Below the pieces are notes generated by a model. It saw only the letters and a list, made by a program, of their open reading frames with translations. It did not search any database and was not told the origin of the DNA. From positions 124,001 through 188,000 of IMG/VR virus record IMGVR_UViG_3300037245_001419: a stretch of 64,000 nucleotides of DNA. One strand, written 5' to 3'. Numbering within the stretch: position 1 is the first letter of the stretch; every line of letters begins with the position of its first letter. Below are positions 8,237 to 23,439 of this stretch, piece after piece. A program made the position numbers and the translations under genes.

Positions 8237-8986
8237 ATGTGTCGGAGCATTATGAATATTGAAAAGATACAGGAAGATTCCCTTGAGATAATCATCCCAT
8301 TATACAATTTAGGTCATCACCTAAAGGAATGTCTCACTTCAGTTTACAATAGTGAATCATCCCTACAATTTACAGTGACAATAGTCGATGACTGCAGCAC
8401 TGACGACTCTCTTGCAGTAGCTAGAAAATTAGCAATGGAACTAATTGATCACCCAGGACACAGACTCACTTCAGTTTACTCGAACCCGAAAAACGTACAC
8501 TTGTCAGCCACTAGAAATATTGCTTTAGCTCGTACATCATCTACGCTAATCATATGTCTTGATGCAGACGACATGATTCCACCAAATTACATTGAAGACA
8601 ATTATAAAAACATTTTAGAGCATGATGTAGATATTTCTTACACCAACTCACAATGCTTTGGTACATCATCACAGTTATTAACCTGGCCTGAGTTCAGTAT
8701 AGACCTAATTCGAGAGTCCCCATTCATCAATTGTTCTGCAATGTATAAACGAAACGTATGGGACAAGGCAGGGCCGTATGATGAGACTATGAAGTTAGGT
8801 TGGGAAGACTACGACTTCTGGCTTTCAGCAGCGAAGAGAGGCTTCAAGTTTAGGAAATGCAACACTACTTATTTAGCCTACAGACAATCAGAATCATCCA
8901 TGATCAACACTACAAATGAACAAGCAAATCAATTTAAGATCCGTGAACATTTAAGAGAAAAGCACCCAGCTTTTTATAGAGGTTAA
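8237..8986 (+). CDS. Glycosyltransferase family 2
   Basis: IIIPLYN, IVDDCSTD, SATRNIAL, CLDADD, GWEDYDFWL. Likely start at ATG 8252. Confidence 0.92.
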   Translation: MCRSIMNIEKIQEDSLEIIIPLYNLGHHLKECLTSVYNSESSLQFTVTIVDDCSTDDSLAVARKLAMELIDHPGHRLTSVYSNPKNVHLSATRNIALARTSSTLIICLDADDMIPPNYIEDNYKNILEHDVDISYTNSQCFGTSSQLLTWPEFSIDLIRESPFINCSAMYKRNVWDKAGPYDETMKLGWEDYDFWLSAAKRGFKFRKCNTTYLAYRQSESSMINTTNEQANQFKIREHLREKHPAFYRG

Positions 8987-8987
8987 T

Positions 8988-9188
8988 ATGTCAGAAAATA
9001 TTTATGATATGAAATTGCACGATGAAATAAGCTTAAATAGTTTTGTCACAATTCGTCGAGTACCTGGTGGTTGGCTTTATATAGACTTTAGTTCTTGCTC
9101 ACCAAACTCTTCTGTTACATCTACATTTGTACCATCCAACTCGGAATTTACAGGATATAACCAGGACAAAAATGAAAAACATGAATAA
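8988..9188 (+). CDS. Small hypothetical protein
   Basis: 66 aa ORF (RRVPGGWLY) tightly packed in the operon. Confidence 0.55.
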   Translation: MSENIYDMKLHDEISLNSFVTIRRVPGGWLYIDFSSCSPNSSVTSTFVPSNSEFTGYNQDKNEKHE

Positions 9189-9918
9189 TATTATACAAAG
9201 CCTATGGATAGGCCCAAAACTGTCAGTGATGGAACAACTATGCATCAAATCATTCTTAGCAAACGGACACGAGTTCCACCTTTACTGCTACAATGAAATA
9301 GAGAATGTCCCAGAAGGTACAACTATATGCGACGGTAACGAGATTCTACCAGAATCAGAAGTATTTTCATATCAAGTGGGGCCTGGAAAAGGTTCGTACT
9401 CAGCATTCTCAAACTACTTTAGATATAAAATGCTAGAAATGAAAGGTGGATGGTGGGTGGATACTGACATCATTTGCCTAAAACCATTTGATCACAAAGG
9501 TGAATTCGTATTCAGCTCTGAGATTACACACGAAAACACGCAACACACCACAAGTTCAGTAATCAAAGCCCCAGCAGGAAATGACTTTAGTTACTACTGC
9601 TATAATATCTGTGCAGATCAAGATAAAAAGACTCTTGAATGGGGTACAGTTGGCCCTAAATTAGTCAAAGGAGCAGTAGAGTTCTTCGAAATGGAAGCAT
9701 ATGTTCAAGAACCCCATGTTTTTTGCCCTCTAGGATACCAACACGCCCCTTTAATTGTACAAGAAGGCATTGACATTGACTTCCCAGAAGAGACCTATGC
9801 GGTGCACCTATGGAACGAAATGTGGAGACGGCACGGCATCGACAAAGAAAAGAAATACGATGAGTCAACAATATACGAACAACTAAAGTCACGTTACGGA
9901 GTAACCAATGATAACTGA
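9169..9918 (+). CDS. Glycosyltransferase family 32-like (DxD sugar-binding)
   Basis: IIQSLWIG, AFSNYFRY, GGWWVDTD, WGTVGP, YAVHLWNEMW. Confidence 0.88.
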   Translation, partial: KMKNMNNIIQSLWIGPKLSVMEQLCIKSFLANGHEFHLYCYNEIENVPEGTTICDGNEILPESEVFSYQVGPGKGSYSAFSNYFRYKMLEMKGGWWVDTDIICLKPFDHKGEFVFSSEITHENTQHTTSSVIKAPAGNDFSYYCYNICADQDKKTLEWGTVGPKLVKGAVEFFEMEAYVQEPHVFCPLGYQHAPLIVQEGIDIDFPEETYAVHLWNEMWRRHGIDKEKKYDESTIYEQLKSRYGVTNDN

Positions 9919-10372
9919 AGTAAAAGCCCCCAATAAATATACTCATTCTAACCTGTTTTTGGCTGGATCAATTGAAAATGGTAAAGCCGAAGAATGGCAA
10001 CAAAGATTTCTTACAGACATGCGAAAGAAATTTACAGTCAACCCAGAAACAAATTTTTTAGTACTCAATCCACGTAGAGACAACTGGTCATTTTGTAGCA
10101 CTGAAATGGAGAAACAAGTATCATGGGAGCTTGATGGACTAGCATCTTCAGATTACATCGCCATGTACTTTGATCCTGATACAATTTCTCCAATTAGCCT
10201 CCTTGAATTAGGGCTATTCGCAACGGAAAAGATCTTCATATGTTGCTCACCTAGATACTATAGATATACTAACATAAAAGTATTATGTCAAAAAGCCGGA
10301 CTTCCTTTATTTGCTGAAGAAGAAGAATGGAGAGATGCAATTTTCCAAGCTATGACCGAGGAGTATTCATGA
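9908..10372 (+). CDS. Nucleoside 2-deoxyribosyltransferase-like protein
   Basis: LFLAGSI...WQ...LNPRR...QVSWELDGL...SPISLLELGL. Confidence 0.85.
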   Translation: MITEVKAPNKYTHSNLFLAGSIENGKAEEWQQRFLTDMRKKFTVNPETNFLVLNPRRDNWSFCSTEMEKQVSWELDGLASSDYIAMYFDPDTISPISLLELGLFATEKIFICCSPRYYRYTNIKVLCQKAGLPLFAEEEEWRDAIFQAMTEEYS

Positions 10373-11400
10373 ACATTTTATACCTAGTGGACAAAAAATA
10401 TTACGACACCAAGATGTCAAGAATTCGTTTCCGAACCATGGAAGCAATCGAAGAATTATGTGATGATTCGCCAGATAATAAATTTTACTGGTATGGCCCA
10501 GGTTGGAACGGATGGGACATACTGAAGACAGCATCAGAAAACATTAAAGATGCATTTGATGGTAATTCAAATCACATAAACCTTATAGTAGCATATAAAC
10601 CTTTAGATATCTACAAGGCAGATGAACTCCATAAAGAATATAAATGCTGCTTAAATTATAATGAAATGTATGATGTTGATTGGACTAAAAAAGAGATCAA
10701 ATATTTTGGTGCGACATTAGTTATCTGTCACCACTATAACGACTGGGAAAAATTTAATCATTATCCATCATTAAATGCGATAGAGTTCCATTACATTCCA
10801 CACTCAGCAGATGAGAAAGCATTTAAGCAATGGAGCTTTGACGGTGTACAGCTACCAAAAATATATGATGTCATGTTAGTGGGTGCATATAATGTATCTA
10901 ATAAATTTGGCAACATATACCCCTTACGTGACAGGCTATCAAAGCTACTTCCAAAGATAGCACCCAAATATAGATGGGGTATATTTAACCATCCATCATA
11001 TGAAAGAGAAGACGCTAATTCAAATCAGTACGCAGAGTTTTTCAGTAAAGCTTTAAATTCTACCAGGATTGCCGTATGCGACTCTTCTATATTTAAGTAT
11101 AGATTAGGCAAGTACATTGAAGTTCCTGCAAGCGGAACTGTATTAGCAGCAGATATGCCGATGACACATCCAGTAGACCAAGAAGCCCTTAAAAATGTCA
11201 TAATCGACATAAATATGGATATGTCAGATCAAGAAATTATAGATACTATAGCAGAATACTTAGAAGACGATACTAAGTATAACCTAAAGGTAAAGAATGG
11301 ATTGGAATATGCTAAAGCATTTACATGCGAATCATACGCCACTAAATTCTTAGATATAATTACGGATTTATATGAAGATACAAATACACACCCTCAATAA
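10369..11400 (+). CDS. GT-B glycosyltransferase (CgeB/YkvP-like)
   Basis: YDVMLVG...YPLRDRL...KYIEVPASGTVL. ATG 10369 follows GAGGAG. Confidence 0.75.
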   Translation: MNILYLVDKKYYDTKMSRIRFRTMEAIEELCDDSPDNKFYWYGPGWNGWDILKTASENIKDAFDGNSNHINLIVAYKPLDIYKADELHKEYKCCLNYNEMYDVDWTKKEIKYFGATLVICHHYNDWEKFNHYPSLNAIEFHYIPHSADEKAFKQWSFDGVQLPKIYDVMLVGAYNVSNKFGNIYPLRDRLSKLLPKIAPKYRWGIFNHPSYEREDANSNQYAEFFSKALNSTRIAVCDSSIFKYRLGKYIEVPASGTVLAADMPMTHPVDQEALKNVIIDINMDMSDQEIIDTIAEYLEDDTKYNLKVKNGLEYAKAFTCESYATKFLDIITDLYEDTNTHPQ

Positions 11401-11815
11401 TAATTTAGCTAAACTTAATGAAATATTAATATATGATAGCAAAGCAGATGAGTATCGACACATTAGTCGTAGCATTAAACCAGATGTTGTATGGTGCTTA
11501 TCAATAGAGGACTGGAAGTCTTTAGGTATAGACACGCTGAAGATACATAAGATAGTATTCAGTATGTATATATCAGACAAATACGAATTTAGTAGAAAAG
11601 AGTTTTTATTTAGAGACAACTTTGCAGCAGCATATCATGTTGTAGATGAAGAGACGAAAGAGCTAATTGAAAAATTGTCATTTAAACCTGTATACCTTAT
11701 TCCATATGAAGAAGATAATATAGATACATTTGATAGAACTGTAATTGAAAACTTTAAAACATCCAAAACTTTTCATAAAAAAATAATGGATATATTTAAA
11801 GAACTTAAAGAGTAA
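11372..11815 (+). CDS. Hypothetical protein in the glycosylation operon
   Basis: ORF overlaps its neighbours in the operon. Confidence 0.55.
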   Translation: MKIQIHTLNNNLAKLNEILIYDSKADEYRHISRSIKPDVVWCLSIEDWKSLGIDTLKIHKIVFSMYISDKYEFSRKEFLFRDNFAAAYHVVDEETKELIEKLSFKPVYLIPYEEDNIDTFDRTVIENFKTSKTFHKKIMDIFKELKE

Positions 11816-11816
11816 T

Positions 11817-12686
11817 ATGAGAAGGGTAGTATTTACATCGGAAAGATCTAACATGGCGACTGCAGGTTCTTTTTACCTGCGTGCAGTCCAAGTGTACATG
11901 GCATTGCAGAGACATGGCATAAAAGCTTTTATGGAGTCCCCTGAAAAATTAGCTACACAGTCAGGAAACATTATATTCTTTATAAAACCTATTGAAAATA
12001 GCATGGAAAAGATTGAAACACTATGCGAGAATAACACAGTAATTTTAGATCCTTTAGATTTCATACCAATATTTAAAGACCTACCTCCTGGATTAGTACA
12101 TGGTTGCTTATTCAACAATAATAAAGCTAGAAATAAGTTTATTCATTTGTTTAAAAATAAAGAAATGTGTCCAGTTATCTATCATCACATAGACTTACGA
12201 TTTCGGAGCGCAACGAATCCACCAGACGAACTAAAGTTTTTATACTTAGGCACTAACTCTGAAAGAAAAGTATATGCTTACAATGAGTTCGACGATATTG
12301 ATTACAAATCAATTAATGGCAATCCTTCAGATTTTAACCAGTACACAGATCTTATAGGAAAGTACAACTGTCACTATATTGTTAACGGTTTAAAAGACGC
12401 TAAACGAAGATCATACGAGCCTTTCACAAAGTTAGCAATGGCATCTATTAATCACAGTCCCGTAATAACATATAAGAAAGATCACATTGAAATATTAGGA
12501 GAATACTATCCTTATTATATAACTAGTAAAGATATAGGTTCTGTAAAAAATATGATAAACTACATAAAAAAGACTTATAAAACTAAAGTATGGAATGATG
12601 CAGTCTCTATAATGAAAGATGCTAAAGAGAAGTTTTTACTTGGTAATACAATTCATACATATATAGATATTATAAAAAAACATTAA
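11817..12686 (+). CDS. Putative GT-B glycosyltransferase
   Basis: GSFYLRA...KP...ILDPLD...YHHID...KLAMA pattern; operon context. Confidence 0.5.
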   Translation: MRRVVFTSERSNMATAGSFYLRAVQVYMALQRHGIKAFMESPEKLATQSGNIIFFIKPIENSMEKIETLCENNTVILDPLDFIPIFKDLPPGLVHGCLFNNNKARNKFIHLFKNKEMCPVIYHHIDLRFRSATNPPDELKFLYLGTNSERKVYAYNEFDDIDYKSINGNPSDFNQYTDLIGKYNCHYIVNGLKDAKRRSYEPFTKLAMASINHSPVITYKKDHIEILGEYYPYYITSKDIGSVKNMINYIKKTYKTKVWNDAVSIMKDAKEKFLLGNTIHTYIDIIKKH

Positions 12687-12718
12687 GGATAAATTGAAAT
12701 GAAAGTTTATATAGTGTC

Positions 12719-13631
12719 CGACATTGTTGACGGGCCGATGGGCGGTCGCAATCAACTAGTAAAATTTTTAATACACCTACTCAAACAAAAAAATGTATAC
12801 ACCGATAATGTGAAAGATGCAGACATAATCTTATTTGATTCTTGGCATAGATACAACGATGTCATAGAGCTTAAAAAAATATATGAAGACAAGATATTTG
12901 TGCATCGATTAGATGGCCCTATAAAACTATATAATAATATGGATGATAACAGGGACGATATAATATACGCTATGAATGGAAGAATTGCTTCAGCTACTAT
13001 ATTCCAATCTGAATACTCAAAACATAATAATGAGGAGATGGGACTATTAATAGACAAGCCATTCATAGTCGCCAACAATGTTGCAGACAGTAGATACTTC
13101 TATAGAAATAAAGATATTACAGAAGAAAAAGATTCATCTGGTAGAATAGAAATAATATCTACTTCATTTTCAAGTAACTACAAGAAAGGTTTTGACGTAT
13201 ATGAATACCTCGATAACAACCTGGACTTCGACACCTACAATTATACATTCATTGGAAACAGCCCTGTCAAATTTAAAAATATAATACACAAACCGCCAAT
13301 GAATAGCTTAGATCTGGGCAATGAGCTTCGAAACAGCGACTTATATATTTCGGCATCATTGAACGACCCCTGTTCCAACTCTTTAATAGAAGCTAAAGCA
13401 TGCGGTCTCCCAGTAATTGCACGAAACTCAGGTGGTCATCCTGAGATCGTCGGCAAAGGTAGTTTATTATTTAACGATACTGATAATATACTAGAAATTA
13501 TCAACGAAACATACGATAACTTAGTCACACTAATGTATGAAATAACCTCAAGAACTCCTAAAGATTTCATCGAACAATATATACAGTTTTTCACAGACCT
13601 ATTAAATCAGTCAAGGAACAACAATGATTAA
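12719..13631 (+). CDS. Glycosyltransferase family 4
   Basis: GPMGG, IFQSEY, DLYISASLNDPCSNSLIEAKACGLPVI, SGGHPEIV (EX7E-type motif). Confidence 0.9.
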
Positions 13632-14211
13632 TAAACCACTTATGGCTAACGACGATTTTATTAAAAAAGAAGCTAAGAAACATTCTTCTGAGAAGAAAAG
13701 AATAGTAACAATGTCTAAGAATGTTATTAGAAATGAACATGCAGAAATAATCAAAAAAATTAACGTAAAAAGAATGTTATGTATTGGTTGTAGACATGAT
13801 TCAGAAATAGTTTCATTTAACAAGAATGGATTCAGTGCGTCAGGTATCGACGTTGCAATAGAGACAGACCTTATCAAGCGTATGAACGCTCACGATATAA
13901 AAGAAACTTTTTCTGAAAATGAATTTGATGTTGTGTACTCTTCACATTCATTGGAACATATGTATGATCCTAAATTAGTGTTAGAAGGTATCAAGAAAAT
14001 AAGTAAACATGGCGTGTTTATTGTTCTCCCAATACAAATAAATGGTCAGCCATCTCATTCGCACCCCACAATGTTTGATGTGATGTTAAACCCACCACAA
14101 AGACTAAAAAAAGACAATCCTGTTTTAGACGACTTTAGTTGTCTTGGAGAATTTAAGGTGTCGTATTATAAAAAATCTTATGATGAAATAATTATGTATT
14201 TAACTTGGTAA
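13624..14211 (+). CDS. Class I SAM-dependent methyltransferase
   Basis: MLCIGCR...GID...FDVVYSSHSLEH. Confidence 0.85.
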   Translation: MINKPLMANDDFIKKEAKKHSSEKKRIVTMSKNVIRNEHAEIIKKINVKRMLCIGCRHDSEIVSFNKNGFSASGIDVAIETDLIKRMNAHDIKETFSENEFDVVYSSHSLEHMYDPKLVLEGIKKISKHGVFIVLPIQINGQPSHSHPTMFDVMLNPPQRLKKDNPVLDDFSCLGEFKVSYYKKSYDEIIMYLTW

Positions 14212-14217
14212 TAATTT

Positions 14218-14943
14218 ATGAAAATAGGTTGTATAATCAGATCCGTTGGTGAACGGACAGAAAATTTATGTATAGACTCTGTTGAACAATACATCAGTGA
14301 TGTTAATATAATAAAAAATGTTAGTCCATTTCACAAGGCTGTAGATCAAATGTTTGAGTATGCAGCTAAACAAGATTGGGACTGGTACATTGGTCTCGAT
14401 GCAGACGTAATACTTGCACCAGGTTGGTACGACACTTTAGTTAACTACCTCACTCATTTAGAAGGGAATGTTTTTAGAATAGACTTTCAGATTAAAGATA
14501 AGTTTGTTGACCCATTATTATGGGGGGTGCATGTTTATAATAATACCCACACTTCCTTATTAAGAGATGTATTGAAAAAAACTACACATCTAAATAAACC
14601 TGAGAGTGCCATTGTACACCAATTAAGAACCCACGCAAAGGCAATCAACGCCACTGGGATACTATTAGGATACCATGGATACCACCAATACAAGAAAGAC
14701 ATATTTAATAGATTTGCATTAAGAGCAACCCGTAACCCTGAGTGGTTAGAAAAATATAAATTGTTTAAACACTACGATGAAGATACAGCCATTGGAAAAC
14801 AAGGATGGAAGTATGGTCGAAAAAATATAAAAAAGATTGACTTCATGGACTACAATAATAAGAAAGACTTTGAGAACGAGTATCCACCTCTTAAAATAAC
14901 ACTTGAAGAATTCTATAAAGAAATAAAGGAGAGCAATGTTTAA
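14218..14943 (+). CDS. Putative GT-A glycosyltransferase
   Basis: IIRSVGERTE...WYIGLDADV (DxD). Confidence 0.6.
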   Translation: MKIGCIIRSVGERTENLCIDSVEQYISDVNIIKNVSPFHKAVDQMFEYAAKQDWDWYIGLDADVILAPGWYDTLVNYLTHLEGNVFRIDFQIKDKFVDPLLWGVHVYNNTHTSLLRDVLKKTTHLNKPESAIVHQLRTHAKAINATGILLGYHGYHQYKKDIFNRFALRATRNPEWLEKYKLFKHYDEDTAIGKQGWKYGRKNIKKIDFMDYNNKKDFENEYPPLKITLEEFYKEIKESNV

Positions 14944-15520
14944 GTCTACTCTTGATAAAATAAAACACAAAGATACTTACGGCCCAACAACTTCTCGAAA
15001 ATTTAAAGAAGATATGATAGAAATTCTTATGGATAAACCCTGGAATGGAGACATACTAGAAGTAGGAATATTTACAGGTGAGACCACTCTCATTTTAGCA
15101 AAAATTGCAGAGAAGTTAAATAAAAAAGTATACGCATTTGAACAAAACAGTTCGTACATTAACCAAACACAGAGACTTCTAAAAGCTCATAATATAACTA
15201 ATGTAGAAATACAATTGAAAGATGTATATACGCAAGAATGGACAGTTGAAAATATAGGCTGTACGTTTATTGATTGTGTTCATACGCAAATGCATATTAG
15301 ACAAGACATACATAATACAAAATCAGTCATGTCAGGCAAAGGCTTTGTTTTTGTCCATGATTATGGGTTGATTGATGAACATGGTCAAAGTATAAAGCCA
15401 TATATAGATATATGTGAAATAACAAAGATCGTTAGGTTTATGGGTGAAGAATCCGATTGGGATAAAGTCCCGTATGGTAAAATTGTTGACTGGGAAGCAG
15501 CCCAATTGGAATTTATATAA
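14936..15520 (+). CDS. SAM-dependent methyltransferase (Methyltransf_24-like)
   Basis: ILEVGIFTGET...FIDCVH...VFVHDY. Confidence 0.82.
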   Translation: MFKSTLDKIKHKDTYGPTTSRKFKEDMIEILMDKPWNGDILEVGIFTGETTLILAKIAEKLNKKVYAFEQNSSYINQTQRLLKAHNITNVEIQLKDVYTQEWTVENIGCTFIDCVHTQMHIRQDIHNTKSVMSGKGFVFVHDYGLIDEHGQSIKPYIDICEITKIVRFMGEESDWDKVPYGKIVDWEAAQLEFI

Positions 15521-15532
15521 CAAGGAGTATAT

Positions 15533-16441
15533 ATGAAAATATTAGTAACAGGTGGCTTAGGCTTTATAGGGTCAAACTTAGTAGATAAACTATGTGAAGA
15601 TCTTAACAATGATGTATATGTAATGGATAATTTGTCACGGGGTGACGAGATTAGAGCAAACATCAAAGCAACTACATATTCAGTAGATATTCGGGACGAA
15701 CCAGATGTAAATTTCTTTTTCCCCAATGGTCTAGACGTAATAGTCCATTTAGCAGCCTTAGCACGCATACAGCCGTCTTTCGAAGAACCCGTAGAGACAT
15801 GTTCTGTTAATATAGAAGGCACGCAGAAGGTACTCGAAATGGCCCGTAAACTGAAGTGTAAGGTTGTATACGCAGGTTCTAGTTCTGCACTTGGCGATCC
15901 TCATATTAATCCTTATTCATCATCCAAATATATGGGTGAACAAATGGTTGAAGCATACTATAAATGTTTCGATGTTCCAGGAGTTATAACCCGTTTCTAT
16001 AATGTATACGGAAATCGTAACGTCCAGGATGAAAAAATGGGTAATCTATTAGGAATATTACAAAAACAATACCTAGAAGACAAGCCCCTTACTTTAGTTG
16101 AAGATTGTAAGTCAAAAAAGAGAGATTTTACTTCAGTTAATGATATATGTGCCGGATTGATGCTCGCTGCAAGTCTAGATGGAGAGAAAATGAAAGCTCA
16201 GATATATAATTTGGGTAGAGGGTCGAACTTATCGGTCTATGAGGTTGGTATGTTCTTCAAAAAGTACTCTAAAAAGGATATAGTGATCGAATATTTACCT
16301 AAGAGAAAGGGAGAACAGGCAACGTCTTTAGCTGACCTGAAGAAATCACACTCTGAGTTGGGGTTCTACCCCGAAGAAAATATGGAAGATTATATACAAA
16401 ATTGGATTGAAATGAAGGAGATTGATGATGTCAATTTATAA
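15533..16441 (+). CDS. NAD-dependent NDP-sugar epimerase/dehydratase
   Basis: ILVTGGLGFIGS, HLAA, YSSSK (YxxxK), RFYNVYG, RDFT. Confidence 0.93.
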   Translation: MKILVTGGLGFIGSNLVDKLCEDLNNDVYVMDNLSRGDEIRANIKATTYSVDIRDEPDVNFFFPNGLDVIVHLAALARIQPSFEEPVETCSVNIEGTQKVLEMARKLKCKVVYAGSSSALGDPHINPYSSSKYMGEQMVEAYYKCFDVPGVITRFYNVYGNRNVQDEKMGNLLGILQKQYLEDKPLTLVEDCKSKKRDFTSVNDICAGLMLAASLDGEKMKAQIYNLGRGSNLSVYEVGMFFKKYSKKDIVIEYLPKRKGEQATSLADLKKSHSELGFYPEENMEDYIQNWIEMKEIDDVNL

Positions 16442-17210
16442 AAGATTAGATTTTAGCGGTTTGAATGGTTATGGAATAGCAGGTATGGGTTTTGTAGGCT
16501 CAGCTGTATTCAATACCTTTAATAATAAAGATTTTATTGTAGTATACGACAAATATAAAAAACATTTAGACAATAAACTGCCCATATTGAAAAAATGTAC
16601 ATACATATTTGCATGTCTACCCACCCCTATGGGTAAAAATGGCAAACAAGATTTCTCTGCATATCATACATTCTTTAAAGAGATTGAAGGGTATGAAGGT
16701 ATAGTTATTGTAAAAAGTACAGTATTATACTCAAATATAAAACCATACCTTGATAATTTCAACATAGTTATGAATCCAGAGTTTCTTAATCAGAATTCCG
16801 CATACTCTGACATGGAAAATGAGAAGGTAGTTATACTTGGTGGTGAAATTGACCTGGTAACTAAAGTAAAAAAACTTTATCAGAATAGCATGGGCAAAAA
16901 AGATGTATCATTTGAGATGTGCTCTATTGAAGAATCTATTAATATTAAGTATTTACATAACAACTACCACGCATATAAGGTATTGTTCTGGAATATGGTA
17001 TATGAAGTCACTGGAAATCACCGCAAAATCTTTGATGTGTACTCTAAACTCACTGGTAATACTCATGAGATGGCTAACGTAGCCTCAGATGGTAAGCTAG
17101 GATACGGTGGTGCATGCTTCCCGAAAGACGTAAACGCATTTTTTCATGAACATAACCACGAACTTAGCGAATTCATGAACAAATATAACGACCGTTTAAG
17201 AGGCGAATAA
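16422..17210 (+). CDS. UDP-glucose/GDP-mannose dehydrogenase family, lacking the C-terminal domain
   Basis: GMGFVG, CLPTP, KSTV, NPEFL, GYGGACFPKD (catalytic Cys); ends about 25 aa later. Confidence 0.88.
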   Translation: MMMSIYKRLDFSGLNGYGIAGMGFVGSAVFNTFNNKDFIVVYDKYKKHLDNKLPILKKCTYIFACLPTPMGKNGKQDFSAYHTFFKEIEGYEGIVIVKSTVLYSNIKPYLDNFNIVMNPEFLNQNSAYSDMENEKVVILGGEIDLVTKVKKLYQNSMGKKDVSFEMCSIEESINIKYLHNNYHAYKVLFWNMVYEVTGNHRKIFDVYSKLTGNTHEMANVASDGKLGYGGACFPKDVNAFFHEHNHELSEFMNKYNDRLRGE

Positions 17211-17262
17211 CTAAAGTAAACCCATAATATAAATACTTCAAACCATTTTGGAGTGTTTGTAT

Positions 17263-17787
17263 ATGGGTTTCCCTAACGCTTTTAGTTCCGACAAGTTTCA
17301 ATTAAGATTTAGCAACATACCTACTGTCGGTGACAAGAAGGTAGACACTAGACTATTTGATTTATATGTCAAATCAATCATTGTATCAGATATTAACGAA
17401 GAGTTAGTTAACTCTGACATCTTTAATTTTCAGATAAGACATCCTATATCTAGAGCGAATGAAAATCTCAATCAGCTCATCATAGAATTTGTGTTAGATG
17501 AAGATTTCGAGAACTACTTCACGTTCTTTAATTTCATGCAACAAGAGAGATACCTGTACACTGAGAACACACCATCACAACCAAACGATGTTTTTAGACT
17601 TAATAATATAAAAACAATCGCCCTGGAACTACTGGATAATCAAGGCAGAGTTAAAAAAAGCCTGGACTTTACAGAAGCATATATTACATCCCTTAATTCA
17701 CTCAATTTAATTATGGGACTGTCAGAACAAGTAACATTTAATGCGTCATTTCAATACGAGCAGATATTGTTTAGAGAGAACGATTAA
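17263..17787 (+). CDS. T4 gp3-like tail terminator / tube-fold protein
   Basis: FQLRFSNIP...IEFVLDEDFENYF...LELLDN...FTEAYITSL; late promoter at 17228. Confidence 0.7.
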   Translation: MGFPNAFSSDKFQLRFSNIPTVGDKKVDTRLFDLYVKSIIVSDINEELVNSDIFNFQIRHPISRANENLNQLIIEFVLDEDFENYFTFFNFMQQERYLYTENTPSQPNDVFRLNNIKTIALELLDNQGRVKKSLDFTEAYITSLNSLNLIMGLSEQVTFNASFQYEQILFREND

Positions 17788-17816
17788 AATGTGAAAATTT
17801 TATAAATATTAAAAAA

Positions 17817-18227
17817 TTGATTGAAGAGGACTATATGGAAACTATAGATAATTTGATAGAGTTTGAACCTTTGACTGATCTTAAGATCATCAAAGAAACT
17901 CTAGGCAGAATGGGTATCGCCAACAAGAAAGATAAAATATTATACCCGACAGCGTACATTTATGGAAACTTCGATAAGATGTACCTGGCACATTTCAAAC
18001 AACTGTTCCTTCTATCCCGTAAAGATGCGTATCCAAATGTATCAAGCGAAGACATAGAGAGACTAAACAGTATAGCTTTCTGCTTAGAAAGTTGGGGCCT
18101 TATTAAAATAATAAACGAAAGCATCGAACCCCACAACAAATTTATATTCGTTCTCCCATTTGAAGAAAAAGTAAACTGGGAAATATCACATAAATTCAAC
18201 ATTAAATCACTAAAATTTGCGAGGTAG
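17817..18227 (+). CDS. regA: T4-like translational repressor RegA
   Basis: IKETLGRMGIANKKDKILY...HFKQL...RLNSIAFCLESWGLIKI closely follows T4 RegA. Confidence 0.93.
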   Translation: MIEEDYMETIDNLIEFEPLTDLKIIKETLGRMGIANKKDKILYPTAYIYGNFDKMYLAHFKQLFLLSRKDAYPNVSSEDIERLNSIAFCLESWGLIKIINESIEPHNKFIFVLPFEEKVNWEISHKFNIKSLKFAR

Positions 18228-18228
18228 C

Positions 18229-18372
18229 ATGAAAAGTTATGGCTTATTTGACGACGACGAGAATGGTTTAGAAGACGGTATGGGAATACCAAAATACGAT
18301 AATATATTTGGTGAAGAACCGGAAGAAGAGACAGAAGAATTAGATTTTTCACACGATGATGAGAATTTATAA
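18229..18372 (+). CDS. 47-aa acidic peptide (not in the ORF track)
   Basis: GAGGT SD, then MKSYGLFDDDENGLEDGMGIPKYDNIFGEEPEEETEELDFSHDDENL. Confidence 0.55.
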   Translation: MKSYGLFDDDENGLEDGMGIPKYDNIFGEEPEEETEELDFSHDDENL

Positions 18373-18397
18373 ATAATAGAATAAAGCGGAGGGACGA

Positions 18398-18904
18398 ATG
18401 CCTTATTTTAACGAATACATAAAAACATTACTTGAGAACGATGAAAATTGTGTTTTTATCAATGAAGACGACATTCAGAATTATGATCTGTCACAAATGG
18501 ATGAGAGAATCATTAAACAGAGAGTTGTTAGAGGTGGTAAAAGAAAGTTTAAATTTCAAACGAGTAAGGCTGGATTCAAAGTTTTAGTAAACAAAGAAGG
18601 CGTACCGAAAGAAGTTTTAATTCCACCCAAAGAAAGAAAAGCAAGAGAAATTTCACAGAAACGAGCTGCAAGACTAAGAAAAGTTAAGCAAGATCCGGCA
18701 CAAGAAAAAAGAGCTGCATCAATCAAACGATCTGAGATCATCCATAAGACTTCTTCAGAAAAGAAGCAAGATGAGCTACTTAAGAAGAAAAGAGATAAAG
18801 AAAAAGAAGATAAAGAAAGACAAAAACGCTTAACAGGTGGTGGTGGTACTAAGCCAAGCGACACCAAGAGAGAATCTTTCTCAGGAGTATACTATGGGAT
18901 TTAG
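18398..18904 (+). CDS. Prohead core protein, gp68-like
   Basis: Acidic N-terminus followed by basic RVVRGGK...GFK...ERKAR...KRAAR...KRAASIKRS, resembling T4-like gp68 core proteins. Confidence 0.55.
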   Translation: MPYFNEYIKTLLENDENCVFINEDDIQNYDLSQMDERIIKQRVVRGGKRKFKFQTSKAGFKVLVNKEGVPKEVLIPPKERKAREISQKRAARLRKVKQDPAQEKRAASIKRSEIIHKTSSEKKQDELLKKKRDKEKEDKERQKRLTGGGGTKPSDTKRESFSGVYYGI

Positions 18905-19073
18905 ACAATTTTTTTACGTTGAAACTAAATCACCAAAAACCAGTGGTACACGCTTTGGATTTGCTCACGTCATTAGACACCCTGCCACATCTAGTAAAGA
19001 GAATGGTAACGGCAATGGTGAAGGTGATAGTGGTAGCGATGGTGGTGGTGATGGTGGCGGTGGGGGCGAGTAA
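18894..19073 (+). CDS. Small putative internal head protein
   Basis: AGGAG then ATG 18894: MGFRQFFYVE..., Gly-rich tail. Confidence 0.55.
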   Translation: MGFRQFFYVETKSPKTSGTRFGFAHVIRHPATSSKENGNGNGEGDSGSDGGGDGGGGGE

Positions 19074-19075
19074 CT

Positions 19076-19594
19076 GTGAACTTTAAAGATTTTTATAGCA
19101 TAGACCCAGTAATAGTTAATCTCTCTGAAGCACTTCAGATGGACGAAGAAACTGTTGCAGATCTGCGTTCATCTACAGATTCTGGAAGAAAGAAAAGATC
19201 TGGCCCAGTGGGTTCATTTTTTGAGAATGTATCAGCTAATTGGACGGTTATGTATACCTCTACTGCAGTAACTACACCAGGCGTAAGCCGTTGGACTCAA
19301 TATATTCAACCAGTAAATTTACCTGGACTGCGAGCATCACTAGATGAAGTGAGAGCATCATTTAATGGTGACGTTTTGGCGCATTGTACGTGTCCAGATT
19401 ATCGTTACAGGCTCGAATATTATGCAACACAAGATAGTTGGAATTATGGATCTGGGCAATCGACACCACCAAATGTAACAAATCCACCACCACCTCAGTA
19501 TGGAAAACTATGCAAGCATCTGGTAAATAGCATGGGTGTTATCAAAGGATCAACACCTACGATATTAAGCAATTACAGAAAGAAATTTTTATAG
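19076..19594 (+). CDS. SWIM zinc-finger protein
   Basis: HCTCPDYRYR...GKLCKHL (CxC...CxH). Confidence 0.8.
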   Translation: MNFKDFYSIDPVIVNLSEALQMDEETVADLRSSTDSGRKKRSGPVGSFFENVSANWTVMYTSTAVTTPGVSRWTQYIQPVNLPGLRASLDEVRASFNGDVLAHCTCPDYRYRLEYYATQDSWNYGSGQSTPPNVTNPPPPQYGKLCKHLVNSMGVIKGSTPTILSNYRKKFL

Positions 19595-19603
19595 GAGTAT
19601 TGA

Positions 19604-19858
19604 ATGAGTTTTTTTGAATTTTTAAATGAGAAAAGATTACTAGAAGAATTGGGAAACTTCCCAGACATAGCACTCAAAGCAGGTCGTAAGAAAAAATTCT
19701 TAGTAGTTGAATATAGTGAATGTGATGGTGGAATTAAGTTAAAATCCAACCAAGGCAAAGTTTTAGCTGAACATGACGTAGGGCAATTCCTACATGCAGA
19801 TCTACTTTGTCACTTCCTTGAGGCTCACGACCATCAAGTAAAACTAAAAGAGATATAA
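19604..19858 (+). CDS. Small putative internal head protein
   Basis: MSFFEFLNE N-terminus; AGGAG SD. Confidence 0.5.
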   Translation: MSFFEFLNEKRLLEELGNFPDIALKAGRKKKFLVVEYSECDGGIKLKSNQGKVLAEHDVGQFLHADLLCHFLEAHDHQVKLKEI

Positions 19859-19900
19859 ATAGTAACAGATTGATTGAATAATTCGGGAGGATAATTTAAT

Positions 19901-20221
19901 ATGAGTTTTAGACAATTTTTTTATGAAGGCATGGCCGTTCTTAATGATAGACAAAGCAAACTAGAAGCATCACCATACCCACGAGTGGGGAGAACTTCTT
20001 ATAATGCAGTCGATGAGAATACATGGTCTGGTCACGATGCACACGCACATGGATTTAATCTAGATGAGAACGGTAACGGTAAAACAGATAGCTTCGGTAA
20101 CGTAAGCGGAAAAGATACCCACTACCATGAAGTTAGAGGATGGGCAGTATTGCCAGCCAATAACCACGCTCACGGACTTACAGACAAATCTATCAGCGAT
20201 AAGAACTTCAAGAACAGCTAA
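19901..20221 (+). CDS. His-rich YmaF-like protein, putative internal head protein
   Basis: MSFRQFFYE start; repeated HxH motifs (HAH, HYH, HAH); late promoter at 19854. Confidence 0.55.
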   Translation: MSFRQFFYEGMAVLNDRQSKLEASPYPRVGRTSYNAVDENTWSGHDAHAHGFNLDENGNGKTDSFGNVSGKDTHYHEVRGWAVLPANNHAHGLTDKSISDKNFKNS

Positions 20222-20357: not shown

Positions 20358-20783
20358 TTATTTTTTATCTCCTGTCCAAGTATCCCATTCTTTCCAACGT
20401 GTAAAATTAATATGTATTTCTTTTTCAGAGAAATACTTTAGTTTTAGTTGGCATATTTCTTCAAGGCCGTCAATACGAGAGTAATTCAACGCACATCCCT
20501 TGCTACTACAAATATCCTTCAGCTTACTCAATTGATTTTGAGGTATACCAAGTGTATAGTAATAGTCTCCACTATAACGCAACGCCCACGCATGCCTATC
20601 ACCATCTTCACCTGATCTAACTAAAGTAATTTTATCAGTCAACCCATACTTATAATTACCAATCAACAAACTAAAGTTCATACTACTATTACTATAACCA
20701 GACGGTTTACCTTCAAAATGAGTGTTAAATATATTTCCGTATAAGTATTTGAGCACTACTTTTCTTTTATCTAACTTTGCCAT
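20358..20783 (-). CDS. Paralogue family X member
   Basis: MAKLDKRKV start; C-terminal ICSSKGCALNYSRIDGLEEICQLKLKYF. Confidence 0.75.
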   Translation of the reverse strand: MAKLDKRKVVLKYLYGNIFNTHFEGKPSGYSNSSMNFSLLIGNYKYGLTDKITLVRSGEDGDRHAWALRYSGDYYYTLGIPQNQLSKLKDICSSKGCALNYSRIDGLEEICQLKLKYFSEKEIHINFTRWKEWDTWTGDKK

Positions 20784-20786
20784 ACA

Positions 20787-21173
20787 TTACCAGGTTTTAA
20801 ATTCTACTTCTTTATCTGCAAAATACTTTAGTTTGATTGCACAAATCGCTTCGAGACCTTCTTCTCTTGATAGCAGCATAGCCTTGTTCCTATCCTTCAA
20901 TATCTCTTCTGCCATTTTAACCTTATCTAAATGTATCTCAAAAGCAAACCAATAAGGCGTACACCCATACGTAGCACGCACAGGATTATATAACAACCCT
21001 TTACTTACTCTAATTCCACTAAGCTTTACCAGCTCATATTTATCAGTTAAAACATAACTATAATTGCCGATACGTAAACTGTAGTATGTCATCCTAGAGT
21101 ATATGTTACCTCTATACGCATACCCATGTAAACGATGTACCCGTACTTTTCTTTTATCAAGCTTTGCCATCAA
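20787..21173 (-). CDS. Paralogue family X member
   Basis: MAKLDKRKV start; AMLLSREEGLEAICAIKLKYF. Confidence 0.75.
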   Translation of the reverse strand: MMAKLDKRKVRVHRLHGYAYRGNIYSRMTYYSLRIGNYSYVLTDKYELVKLSGIRVSKGLLYNPVRATYGCTPYWFAFEIHLDKVKMAEEILKDRNKAMLLSREEGLEAICAIKLKYFADKEVEFKTW

Positions 21174-21507
21174 ATATTATCTCCGTATTGGGAAAACACT
21201 TTAGTTTGCACTCACAGAAATCCACTATCTTATTATCATTATCTCGTGAATGAAGAACAGCATATCGTGAGTGCTCACAAATCTTTTTAACTATATCTAA
21301 CTTAGCCTCTGAGAATGAAAATGTATGAGACCTTCTTACAGACCATTGATTGTCATGAACAGTCATAGATGGACGACGAGTTACATTTCCTTTATGGTAA
21401 TCATATAATACGTTATCTATTAATAATCTGAAGTAGTGATTGTCATGAAATACATTGATGCCGTTATCGTGTAAAAACTTAAGTTTAACTATCTTTTTCT
21501 TTGTCAT
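21157..21507 (-). CDS. Paralogue family X member
   Basis: ICEHSRYAVLHSRDNDNKIVDFCECKLKCF. Confidence 0.75.
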   Translation of the reverse strand: MTKKKIVKLKFLHDNGINVFHDNHYFRLLIDNVLYDYHKGNVTRRPSMTVHDNQWSVRRSHTFSFSEAKLDIVKKICEHSRYAVLHSRDNDNKIVDFCECKLKCFPNTEIIFDGKA

Positions 21508-21784: not shown

Positions 21785-22476
21785 TTGTTTTTCCTCCGTT
21801 TTTTGCCGCCAGGTAACGTTTTAAAAGAGTAATCATAGAACCCCTTAGAATCTCGTATGACTTCATCAGATCCAACAGGAACTGTCCCTTGTGACTCCAA
21901 CGCCAACTCATTATTAAGATACATATGCAGCTCTTGCATTGCAGTATATGGATCTAGAACTCTAACGAAATCTAAAGGTTTCAACTCAGGATTAACTTCT
22001 AATCCATATTTGGAATCACGCCAATAATGATCATGAATTACCCTAAAGATAGGCACTTTATATTTTAAAAATAATGATTGAAGAAACTTATTATTGCGCA
22101 TCTTCTCATATGCATTTTTATATGAATAATTATCTCTAATATGATGTCGCCTACCCTCCTTTGAGTATTCAGCAAAGAATATATCCATTTCATCAGAATC
22201 AAATATATACCGATCTTTAGTATGATAATTTGAAGACACTACTTTCACATAAGGATATATCACTCCGGCAAAACCGATAGCTTCAATCTCATGAATAGTA
22301 TTGGATTTATTCCAATCATCCCAATATATACAGTGATCATCCCATGTGAATATTTCCAACTTATGTAGAGCATTTTCAATTATTTCAGTTTTACGTTCAT
22401 ACACTGGCACAACCTCGTCTTGAAACATGTTCAAGACGGAGTCGTAGTAATCAGTAAACTTGGAATAGATCCTCAT
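21781..22476 (-). CDS. Conserved phage hypothetical protein
   Basis: MRIYSKFTDYYD...DPYTAMQEL...KGF..YSFK, a pattern familiar from large myophages. Confidence 0.65.
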   Translation of the reverse strand: MRIYSKFTDYYDSVLNMFQDEVVPVYERKTEIIENALHKLEIFTWDDHCIYWDDWNKSNTIHEIEAIGFAGVIYPYVKVVSSNYHTKDRYIFDSDEMDIFFAEYSKEGRRHHIRDNYSYKNAYEKMRNNKFLQSLFLKYKVPIFRVIHDHYWRDSKYGLEVNPELKPLDFVRVLDPYTAMQELHMYLNNELALESQGTVPVGSDEVIRDSKGFYDYSFKTLPGGKKRRKNK

Positions 22477-22958
22477 TACTTTTCATCCATAAACTTTTTA
22501 CGAACATCCATCAGACATATACCCAATAGATTTTTTCCCTTCCAGTTTTTCCGGTCAAATCTTTTCGGGTCATGCTCATCCAAACCGATACCCCAAATCT
22601 TATCAACAGGGGAAGCTTCAACAAGTTCTTTATCACCAGTATCAAACATATACTTTTTTAGTTGCTCGTTCTGACCGAACTTAGCTATGTTCGCATCGAT
22701 AACAATTTTAATGCGGTGCTTATTCCACTCAGCATCATTAAAGCCTTCAACCATACGACCATGCATTTTTTGATCCCATGGATTTTTAGCTTCGAGTATC
22801 ATAGCGAGTCGTTCGTCATCATTAAAGACCCGTGCCTTACCTGCCATCATGTATTGCTCTGCAGTTAAGTATGTAACTCCATCAACGACAAATTCTGATT
22901 TGAACCACTGGCTAAAAGGGCCACCGTAAAAGAAATGAAAATTGTTAGGCTTAGTCAT
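22476..22958 (-). CDS. NADAR (YbiA-like) family protein
   Basis: FSQWF...TAEQYMMAGKA...KFGQN...LVEASPVDKIWGIG...GKNLLG. Confidence 0.93.
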   Translation of the reverse strand: MTKPNNFHFFYGGPFSQWFKSEFVVDGVTYLTAEQYMMAGKARVFNDDERLAMILEAKNPWDQKMHGRMVEGFNDAEWNKHRIKIVIDANIAKFGQNEQLKKYMFDTGDKELVEASPVDKIWGIGLDEHDPKRFDRKNWKGKNLLGICLMDVRKKFMDEK

Positions 22959-23439
22959 TAGTTTTTCCTCCAAGTAATGTTTCTGCTTCAACCAGTGTGG
23001 CATTCTTGTCCCATATGACAACGGTAACATCTTCTCCTCCTAGTTCTTCATTAATAATTAGTTCTATAATTTCCCAGTCACCTCTTGCAAGACCAGCACC
23101 TATTTTAGGCATGCCAATCTTCTTGCCAGAGAACAACTTTTTAATACATCTCATTGCACCACGAACAGCATCGTAGTCAATGTTTATGTTTTGCCTGTTA
23201 CAACCAAACTGTGTGTAAGAGTTTATAACTGTTGGCTTAGTTTTCATAGTGTATGTAATCGTACCCAACTTACTTCTATCACCCTTAATAGTTGCTTTAT
23301 CCTTTTCCCAGGCTTCAGGGAAACTTTCTTTAATCTGTGGCGCAATACCAGACCCCATGTTACAGAAGCAGTTACAGCCATGTGTAATAGCATCAAACTG
23401 AAGTGCATCTTTTACGAGGTCTCCTTTAATATACTTCAT
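22951..23439 (-). CDS. Macrodomain (ADP-ribosylhydrolase) protein
   Basis: KGDL...HGCNCFCNMGSGIAPQIK...INSYTQ...PKIGAGLARGDW. Confidence 0.92.
   Translation of the reverse strand: MKYIKGDLVKDALQFDAITHGCNCFCNMGSGIAPQIKESFPEAWEKDKATIKGDRSKLGTITYTMKTKPTVINSYTQFGCNRQNINIDYDAVRGAMRCIKKLFSGKKIGMPKIGAGLARGDWEIIELIINEELGGEDVTVVIWDKNATLVEAETLLGGKTND

Follow-up and report, generated by a model that had tools for sequence, protein, structure and literature searches.

Ip1, Ip2 and Ip3, which are internal proteins of phage T4, are injected into the host, share only their leader, and each of them blocks a distinct GmrSD enzyme (PMC12373910, PMC9391042); all three disarm type IV restriction enzymes (PMC12373910). 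In their leader, the capsid-targeting sequence (CTS), targeting depends mainly on residues 4 and 7 and processing on residues 8 and 10, and the protease gp21 cuts after L/I-x-E (reviewed in PMC9026906). CTS-tagged internal proteins have been described for T-even phages, with "at least 10" reported; no description of them in distant T4-like lineages was found in the literature searched, subscription journals lying outside its coverage. Here we analyze a stretch of 64,000 nucleotides (hereafter, the window), which spans bases 124001-188000 of a viral contig of 211,777 bp (34.8% G+C; IMG/VR record IMGVR_UViG_3300037245_001419), and in particular five consecutive open reading frames (ORFs) of this window, g1-g5, whose N-termini resemble the CTS. 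The contig originates from marine-sediment metagenomes and the phage is uncultured. We consider it probable that g1-g5 encode small proteins with propeptides of 9-18 residues, being this lineage's version of the T4 CTS, and that these proteins are packaged, cut and probably ejected.

Leaders of g1-g5 and the T4 capsid-targeting sequence

The five ORFs are located at positions 18398-20221 of the window, all on the + strand and co-oriented. A preliminary description of this DNA had listed five consecutive ORFs with CTS-like N-termini; all of them were found at the coordinates given there, and their order is kept in relatives:

18398..18904, + strand: g1, 168 amino acids (aa), leader MPYFNEYIKTLLE; present in the ORF list, with orthologues in relatives
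18894..19073, + strand: g2, 59 aa, leader MGFRQFFYVE; kept in the relatives L006 and L007
19076..19594, + strand: g3, 172 aa, 18-residue leader MNFKDFYSIDPVIVNLSE (MNFKDFYS...NLSE); orthologues in relatives
19604..19858, + strand: g4, 84 aa, leader MSFFEFLNE; orthologues in relatives
19901..20221, + strand: g5, 106 aa, leader MSFRQFFYE, with a body carrying three HxH pairs (tri-HxH); orthologues in relatives

In the T4 record, the leader of IPII and IPIII is MKTYQEFIAE followed by Ala, and that of IPI is MKTFKEFTSTTTPVSTITE, also followed by Ala. The CTS quoted in the preliminary description for all three T4 proteins, MKTYQEFIAE, is therefore exact for IPII and IPIII and does not apply to IPI.

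All five leaders in the window fit the pattern M-x-[FY]-x-x-[FY]-hydrophobic-x-E: an aromatic residue, a second aromatic residue three positions on, a hydrophobic residue and Glu, the spacing being that of the mapped T4 positions. The leader of g1 fits the T4 numbering directly (F4, Y7 and I8) and then closes with L-L-E13. The targeting feature [FY]-x-x-[FY] occurs in g1-g5 and also in two genes located elsewhere in the genome, orf77 and orf160 (see below). With its 18 residues, the leader of g3 resembles that of T4 IPI (19 residues), both having ..P-V....[LI]-[ST]-E followed by Ala. The closing motif is L-x-E in g1 (L-L-E), g3 (L-S-E) and g4 (L-N-E), while the residue at P3 of the proposed cut is aromatic in g2 (Y-V-E), g5 (F-Y-E), orf77 (Y-T-E) and orf160 (F-I-E).

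Conservation of the leaders in relatives and other phages

The five genes were called independently in the relatives L006 (g3 71% identical) and L007/L008 (67%), in the same order and with the leaders kept. The g2 start overlaps the g1 end by 11 nucleotides (nt), and this overlap is retained in L006 and L007; the start codon of g3, GTG in the window, is ATG in the relatives. The leaders of the orthologues are preserved through synonymous and conservative codon changes, indicating that selection acts on the leader peptide.

Tagged genes were also found in other phages. A profile search of the whole library with the g5 family yielded 142 proteins and a degenerate DNA pattern for the tri-HxH core yielded 49 viral contigs, whereas G001 was found by a separate regA search. 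In G001 (regA 56% identical), the slot after regA is occupied by one tagged gene of 460 aa behind a late box, its leader being MDFLELLE followed by Gly. In the 189-kb genome of G002, whose regA is 56% and whose protease is 53% identical, regA is followed by about 13 genes of one orientation that have nothing but the leader in common, in versions including MRFKELYE, MKLKDYINE, MAFTNYLKE and MSFSNYIKE; all of these leaders end with [LI]-x-E, and more of them are found elsewhere in the genome. Besides weak homologues of g1, g3 and g5, the cargos of the G002 array include a DUF5856 protein, a kinase-like protein and a P-loop protein of the AAA_33/Zeta_toxin type, as well as a HAD-like protein that has a DMDGVL motif and no Pfam match. 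In L062, a different phage, the terminase and portal genes flank a run of eight consecutive genes that start with MGK[FI]xxLL..E and include one tri-HxH member. The head module of L032 is T4-like and contains leaders of the T4 type (MQTYNGFINE and MITYKKFIE); two tagged tri-HxH genes are also present in L032.

The number of tagged genes is hence variable (five here, about 13 in G002, one in G001 and eight in L062), as is the locus content, and the bodies of the proteins are unrelated. In L006, L007, G001 and G002, too, regA precedes the leader-bearing genes. The locus after regA is a cargo hotspot, in which relatives retain the leader and change the number and kind of cargos. The same cargo families (tri-HxH, SWIM, g1-like) bear the local version of the leader in each genome, and therefore the leader follows the phage and not the cargo. 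This is as predicted for a targeting signal with a co-evolving receptor, and the opposite of what simple common descent would produce. We regard the comparative evidence as the strongest part of the case.

Two further observations concern G002. Its leader array is interrupted by a GIY-YIG-like ORF, and the genome (L073-L082) harbors at least 8 copies, on both strands, of an endonuclease-like gene starting with MNYQRIY..ERAK.RGLNK.

Leader motifs in the whole genome

A genome-wide motif search had been suggested in the preliminary description as a check. A regular expression derived from the T4 IPI-III leaders alone matched six of 3571 candidate starts in the 212-kb genome, compared to a mean of 0.23 in triplet shuffles. 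Among the six matches are g2, g3, g5 and two genes outside the array:

genome 92095-92328, outside the window: orf77, leader MSFKQFYTE, a paralogue of g5, about 1.4 kb upstream of the portal gene
genome 25381: a 54-aa gene starting with MSNFKEF, with its own late box and ribosome site

In a less strict scan, orf160 (genome 99138, MSFGSFYFIE) joins the set; it is the next gene after gp23 and has a late box in front of it. A further member may be orf108 (genome 84780). When a matrix from 15 G002 leaders was applied to the 3571 starts, orf77, g5, g4, orf108, g3 and g2 ranked 1, 2, 5, 6, 9 and 11, respectively. The late genes for portal, protease, scaffold, capsid and tail are without the motif. 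A set of late genes with T4-type capsid-targeting propeptides, as proposed earlier, is well supported by sequence and comparative evidence, and it extends beyond the five genes of the array. A 40-aa ORF at genome position 210060 (MGFREFEY) lacks both a ribosome site and a late box and was taken as a chance match.

Probable late promoter boxes

The array contains two boxes of the T4 late type:

18368..18375, + strand: T4-type late promoter box TATAAATA, 30 nt before g1; position kept in L006 (4341) and L007 (513)
19854..19861, + strand: second TATAAATA box, overlapping the stop codon of g4, 47 nt before g5; position kept in L006 (5790) and L007 (1996)

The distances from box to start are 30 and 47 nt in the window and 30 and 50 nt in L006/L007, with diverged flanking sequence; in L007, the boxes before g1 and g5 are the sole occurrences of TATAAATA in the contig. 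Since the positions of the boxes are kept in two relatives while the neighboring bases differ, the boxes before g1 and g5 are likely late promoters. The tail-tube-like gene and regA, both upstream of the array, are each preceded by their own TATAAATA (the regA box being at 17801), again at positions kept in relatives.

Prohead protease and head module

The genome encodes a head module:

genome 93758-99046: portal, 85-aa ORF, protease (95824-96480), 90-aa ORF, scaffold (96830-97666) and gp23

The prohead protease is 39% identical to T4 gp21 (E 2e-28) and matches PHROG 207 (1.1e-66) and the gp21 structure in PDB (5JBL; 1.7e-18), the motifs GELxHPP and SSRGxG being retained. The 85-aa and 90-aa ORFs beside the protease gene hold the positions of gp67 and gp68. 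Farther along the genome and outside the window, two adjacent ORFs of 259 and 532 aa (genome 103556-105909; L003:3556-5909) match the ATPase part of the large terminase and may be a duplicated or split terminase gene.

Cargo proteins

The predicted mature forms of g1-g5 have masses of 4.7-18 kDa. No family was found for g1, g2, g4 and g5 in Pfam and PHROG, and the cargos have no sequence similarity to T4 IPI-III (all E > 0.3). A word-index protein search with g3 and g5 retrieved the immediate clade only.

The body of g1 consists of a short acidic stretch followed by a very basic part, and its predicted mature form has 18 kDa and an isoelectric point of 10. It has a weak homologue in the G002 array, behind the leader MRFKELYE (E 7e-4). 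Searches of the ESM Atlas yielded nothing for g4 and, in the case of g1, no lead that exceeded chance. Mutual homology of g1 and orf160 could not be demonstrated (E 0.023). The body of g2 is a Gly/Asp-rich peptide ending with GGGE, and g4 has a 75-residue body with conserved His and Cys.

The g3 protein was previously labeled a SWIM finger. Its CxC...CxH (SWIM-type) signature, formed by C104, C106, C146 and H148, does not vary among four orthologues. With Pfam SWIM (PF04434; cut-off 19.6 bits), the window protein scores 13.5 bits, below the cut-off, and its homologue in G002 reaches 21.1 bits, above it. The label of a His-rich metal binder given to g5 describes a real conserved domain with three HxH pairs, in which metal binding is an assumption.

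The tri-HxH domain that forms the body of g5 has six invariant His, and orf77 is its paralogue in the same genome (E 1e-8). The core of about 55 residues can be written as H.H..V[DN]..G[ND]G.T ... H.H.I..W.V ... H.H. Many members of the family are stand-alone proteins of 70-90 aa, and CTS-like N-termini such as MKSFKEYIKE, MKFQKYLNE and MKLRDYLKE occur among them: outside the clade, 24 of 71 stand-alone tri-HxH proteins have the leader, compared to 6.1 after shuffling of the N-termini. The nearest catalogued relatives are the sub-threshold matches YmaF (PF12788), DUF5661 and PHROG 15223. A weak match to YmaF was found in eight of 30 tri-HxH members, and several members match the C-terminal part of PHROG 15223; no solved structure matching the domain was found. 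Because g5 has no Pfam match and its relatives reach at most 23 bits for YmaF (cut-off 27 bits), we treat tri-HxH as a putative separate, uncatalogued and widespread domain.

The same domain is also repeated two to three times in proteins of 2400-3150 aa encoded by viral contigs (P0012, P0014 and others; L029, L036 and L037). For one further family member, P0045 (L022:232-477), the recorded protein is obtained only with TGA read as Trp, and L022 may belong to a phage whose host uses genetic code 4. The short contigs of P0038, P0021 and P0045 provided no informative gene context.

Proposed mechanism and alternative explanations

In the reading that we favor, the genes would be transcribed late from the two TATAAATA promoters. 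During prohead assembly, the leader (aromatic, two residues, aromatic, hydrophobic) would dock the protein into the scaffolding core, and the gp21-type protease would cleave it after the Glu of the closing hydrophobic-x-E. The freed bodies would then be retained in the head together with the DNA, and would most probably exit with it at infection. We infer packaging, cleavage and ejection of the cargos from the analogy with T4; an early action of the cargos in the host, such as countering its defenses, is speculative. The blocking of GmrSD enzymes by T4 Ip1-3 makes a host-directed or anti-defense role a reasonable idea, and no cargo points to a particular target.

Several observations weigh against this reading. 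At P3 of the proposed cut, g2, g5 and orf77 have Tyr or Phe instead of Leu or Ile, and the g3 orthologue in L006 has Asp in place of the cleavage Glu of the window protein; in T4, Asp at this position blocks processing (PMC9026906). The working definition of the leader also matches about 9% of ordinary ORFs and an endonuclease family in G002. Although the promoters postulated at 18368 and 19854 in the preliminary description do coincide with boxes at conserved positions, the TATAAATA octamer is not enriched in the AT-rich window (10 found, 14 expected). None of the cargos resembles a known anti-defense protein, and AlphaFold models from alignments of 4-5 sequences were too poor for a fold (mean pLDDT 38 for g3 and 51 for g5). 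Finally, the phage is known only from metagenomes.

The alternative that fares best, although we consider it unlikely, is that the leader targets the prohead core and some or all of the proteins are core or scaffold accessories, which, in the manner of T4 gp67, gp68 and gp22, would be cleaved and expelled prior to DNA entry and would be neither retained nor injected. Core proteins are known to be cleaved to fragments that exit the head (PMC9026906). Such a fate is most plausible for g1, g2 and orf160: g1 and orf160 have a gp68-like layout with an acidic front, several hydrophobic-x-E sites and a very basic tail, orf160 immediately follows gp23, and g2 is a tiny Gly/Asp-rich peptide. However, T4 gp67 and gp68 themselves are without CTS, and the conserved Cys and His of g3, g4 and g5 give these proteins the look of folded domains rather than of spacers. 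Moreover, relatives tag predicted enzymes (a P-loop kinase and a HAD-like protein), which are implausible as disposable scaffold, and the locus varies between relatives in the manner of accessory cargo and not of a structural part.

It is very improbable that the shared start is an RNA-level signal, that is, a U/A-rich stretch for translation initiation or RegA binding. RegA binds U-rich sites at start codons, regA is located directly upstream, and the first codons of the genes are very A/U-rich (TTT, AAA, GAA and TAT). Nevertheless, the peptide is kept across the changes AGT/TCA/TCT, TTT/TTC, GAA/GAG, AGA/AAA and TTA/TTG. This retention despite synonymous codon changes points to selection on the peptide and therefore counts against a signal such as a RegA site, and we rejected the RNA-level explanation on this synonymous variation. 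In addition, the closing Glu is at a variable distance (9-18 residues), conservation falls on the positions that genetic mapping identified in the T4 peptide, other phages retain the residue pattern with different codons and a local consensus, and the other late genes of this genome do not have the motif.

Equally hard to credit is that the similar N-termini have no targeting role and were either left over when one ancestral gene was duplicated in tandem or produced by chance through AT-rich codon usage: the genes do adjoin one another, g5 has a paralogue elsewhere in the genome, and Phe, Tyr, Lys and Glu are common at 35% G+C, but the bodies are unrelated (a basic protein, a Gly-rich peptide, SWIM and tri-HxH), the leader is retained while the bodies diverge, the six genomic matches compare with a shuffled mean of 0.23, and in G002, L062 and L032 the leaders of the same cargo families are different and specific to each genome, which is the opposite of what common descent of whole genes predicts.

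Source phage and gene neighborhood

The nearest cultured matches of the phage are cyanophages, with about 39% identity for RegA and about 37% for the major capsid protein gp23. A megablast search of the locus against cultured phages gave no DNA match, and tblastn of g1, g3, g5 and one tri-HxH relative against cultured phages gave nothing useful. Judged from its genes, the phage is T4-like yet remote from cultured phages and appears to represent a deep-branching lineage.

On the left side the array is bordered by two features:

17817..18227, + strand: regA, translational repressor, left anchor of the locus (Pfam Translat_reg 4.9e-21; PHROG 242 1.3e-28)
18217..18372, + strand: very acidic ORF of 47-51 aa between regA and the array, overlapping the regA end

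L006 and L007 share the C-terminal end of the acidic ORF, ..EELDF[SR]H, and G001 has an equivalent acidic ORF; the ORF of the window is probably without a leader. In T4 and in cyanophage P-HM2, regA belongs to the replication module, between gene 62 and gene 43, and P-HM2 has no such array. Here, regA is found in a late-looking cluster (17228-18227), with its own TATAAATA and beside the tail-tube-like gene. Upstream of these two genes lies a cluster of sugar genes (8237-17210, + strand) with two glycosyltransferases, methyltransferases, an NAD-dependent epimerase/dehydratase and a UDP-glucose-dehydrogenase-like gene. A connection of this cluster with hmC-type DNA modification was considered; the contig has no gene of the thymidylate-synthase/dCMP-hydroxymethylase family, the kind of gene that would hint at DNA modification as in T4.

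Downstream of g5, a gene block in the opposite orientation follows. Directly opposite the g5 end are three tandem small paralogues of 141, 128 and 116 aa (20358-21507, - strand), two of which start with MAKLDKRKV... and the third with one extra Met. Farther into this leftward, presumably early, block, NADAR and Macro-domain genes adjoin each other (22476-23439, - strand; Pfam assignments taken from the near-identical contig L009). Both families reverse ADP-ribosylation, and the two genes may be counter-defense genes.

Possible significance

Internal proteins of T4 are the first phage proteins to meet the host. A more general proposition, which we put forward tentatively and with somewhat more doubt than belief, is that a short lineage-tuned N-terminal tag marks packaged and ejected proteins across the whole T4 superfamily, and that the arrays are a reservoir of effectors of the first minutes of infection. 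If so, arrays with between five and over 13 tagged genes would make up this reservoir, and sequence by itself could suffice to recognize it in uncultured phages; besides the tri-HxH family, it would include predicted enzymes (P-loop/zeta-type kinases, HAD-like, kinase-like and SWIM proteins). Should the tag work at such a distance from T4, a simple sequence rule that combines leader, late promoter and gp21-type protease could serve to list the injected proteins of uncultured T4-like phages, and this would give a focused set of candidate counter-defense or take-over factors, new packaging tags for phage engineering, and a first functional handle on the uncatalogued tri-HxH domain.

Comparison with known systems

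In the giant phages phiKZ, 201phi2-1 and SPN3US, a diverged gp21-type protease cuts many head-internal proteins after Glu, and these proteins are delivered to the host (PMC9026906). These ejection (E) proteins differ from the proteins considered here in having long propeptides without a short conserved tag and the cleavage motif S/A-x-E, and they belong to another phage group.

With T4 gp67 and gp68, the comparison is limited to layout. Both g1 and orf160 share the acidic front and very basic tail of gp68 and, like gp68, are likely cleaved at several hydrophobic-x-E sites. However, gp68 has no CTS-type start and no homology to these proteins (BLASTP E 0.76 for g1 and 0.31 for orf160); T4 gp68 matches PHROGs 1049 (1.7e-71), 14114 and 3503, whereas g1 and orf160 match none of them. 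Homology of g1 and orf160 to gp68 was rejected on these BLASTP and PHROG results, and the resemblance of the first gene to gp68 noted earlier is one of composition.

Cultured phages, too, encode a predicted enzyme that has a CTS-type leader: ORF241c of the pseudo-T-even phage RB43, which is also found in RB16, Lw1, Miller and others of this group, is annotated as hypothetical and is not present in the window. It starts with MKSFKDFVSLDE followed by Ala, an IPI-like leader, and contains a P-loop (GGAGSGKG). Its homology to one of the tagged L062 proteins (37-38% identity) begins at residue 1. A P-loop protein, of the AAA_33/Zeta_toxin type, is also among the leader-bearing proteins of G002. No packaging data for ORF241c were found in the literature searched, and it may be an unrecognized internal protein of the RB43-group phages. 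Its gene (L084:5001-5834) is near hoc and inh and adjoins two deoxyribonucleotidase genes.

The closest system remains that of T4 IPI-III and their CTS, together with the ip loci of T-even phages. Shared features are a short propeptide with aromatic residues three apart, followed by hydrophobic-x-Glu; genes that are late in T4 and probably late here, in a genome encoding a gp21-type protease; small mature proteins (5-18 kDa here and 8-21 kDa in T4); and bodies with only the leader in common, at a locus whose gene content differs between relatives. On the other hand, the consensus is MxFxxF[FYL]xE here and MKTYQEFIAE in T4, P3 is often aromatic here, the array is located behind regA in a late cluster, and the phage is very remote from the T-evens; packaging and injection, known for T4, are predicted here. 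The system described here would work like the T4 internal-protein/CTS system and agrees with it in the features that can be read from sequence, apart from P3, which is not always Leu or Ile, and from late expression, which is predicted from the promoter boxes. While the kind itself is known from T4, what appears to be new is the reach of the tag into a remote lineage, and its new cargos.

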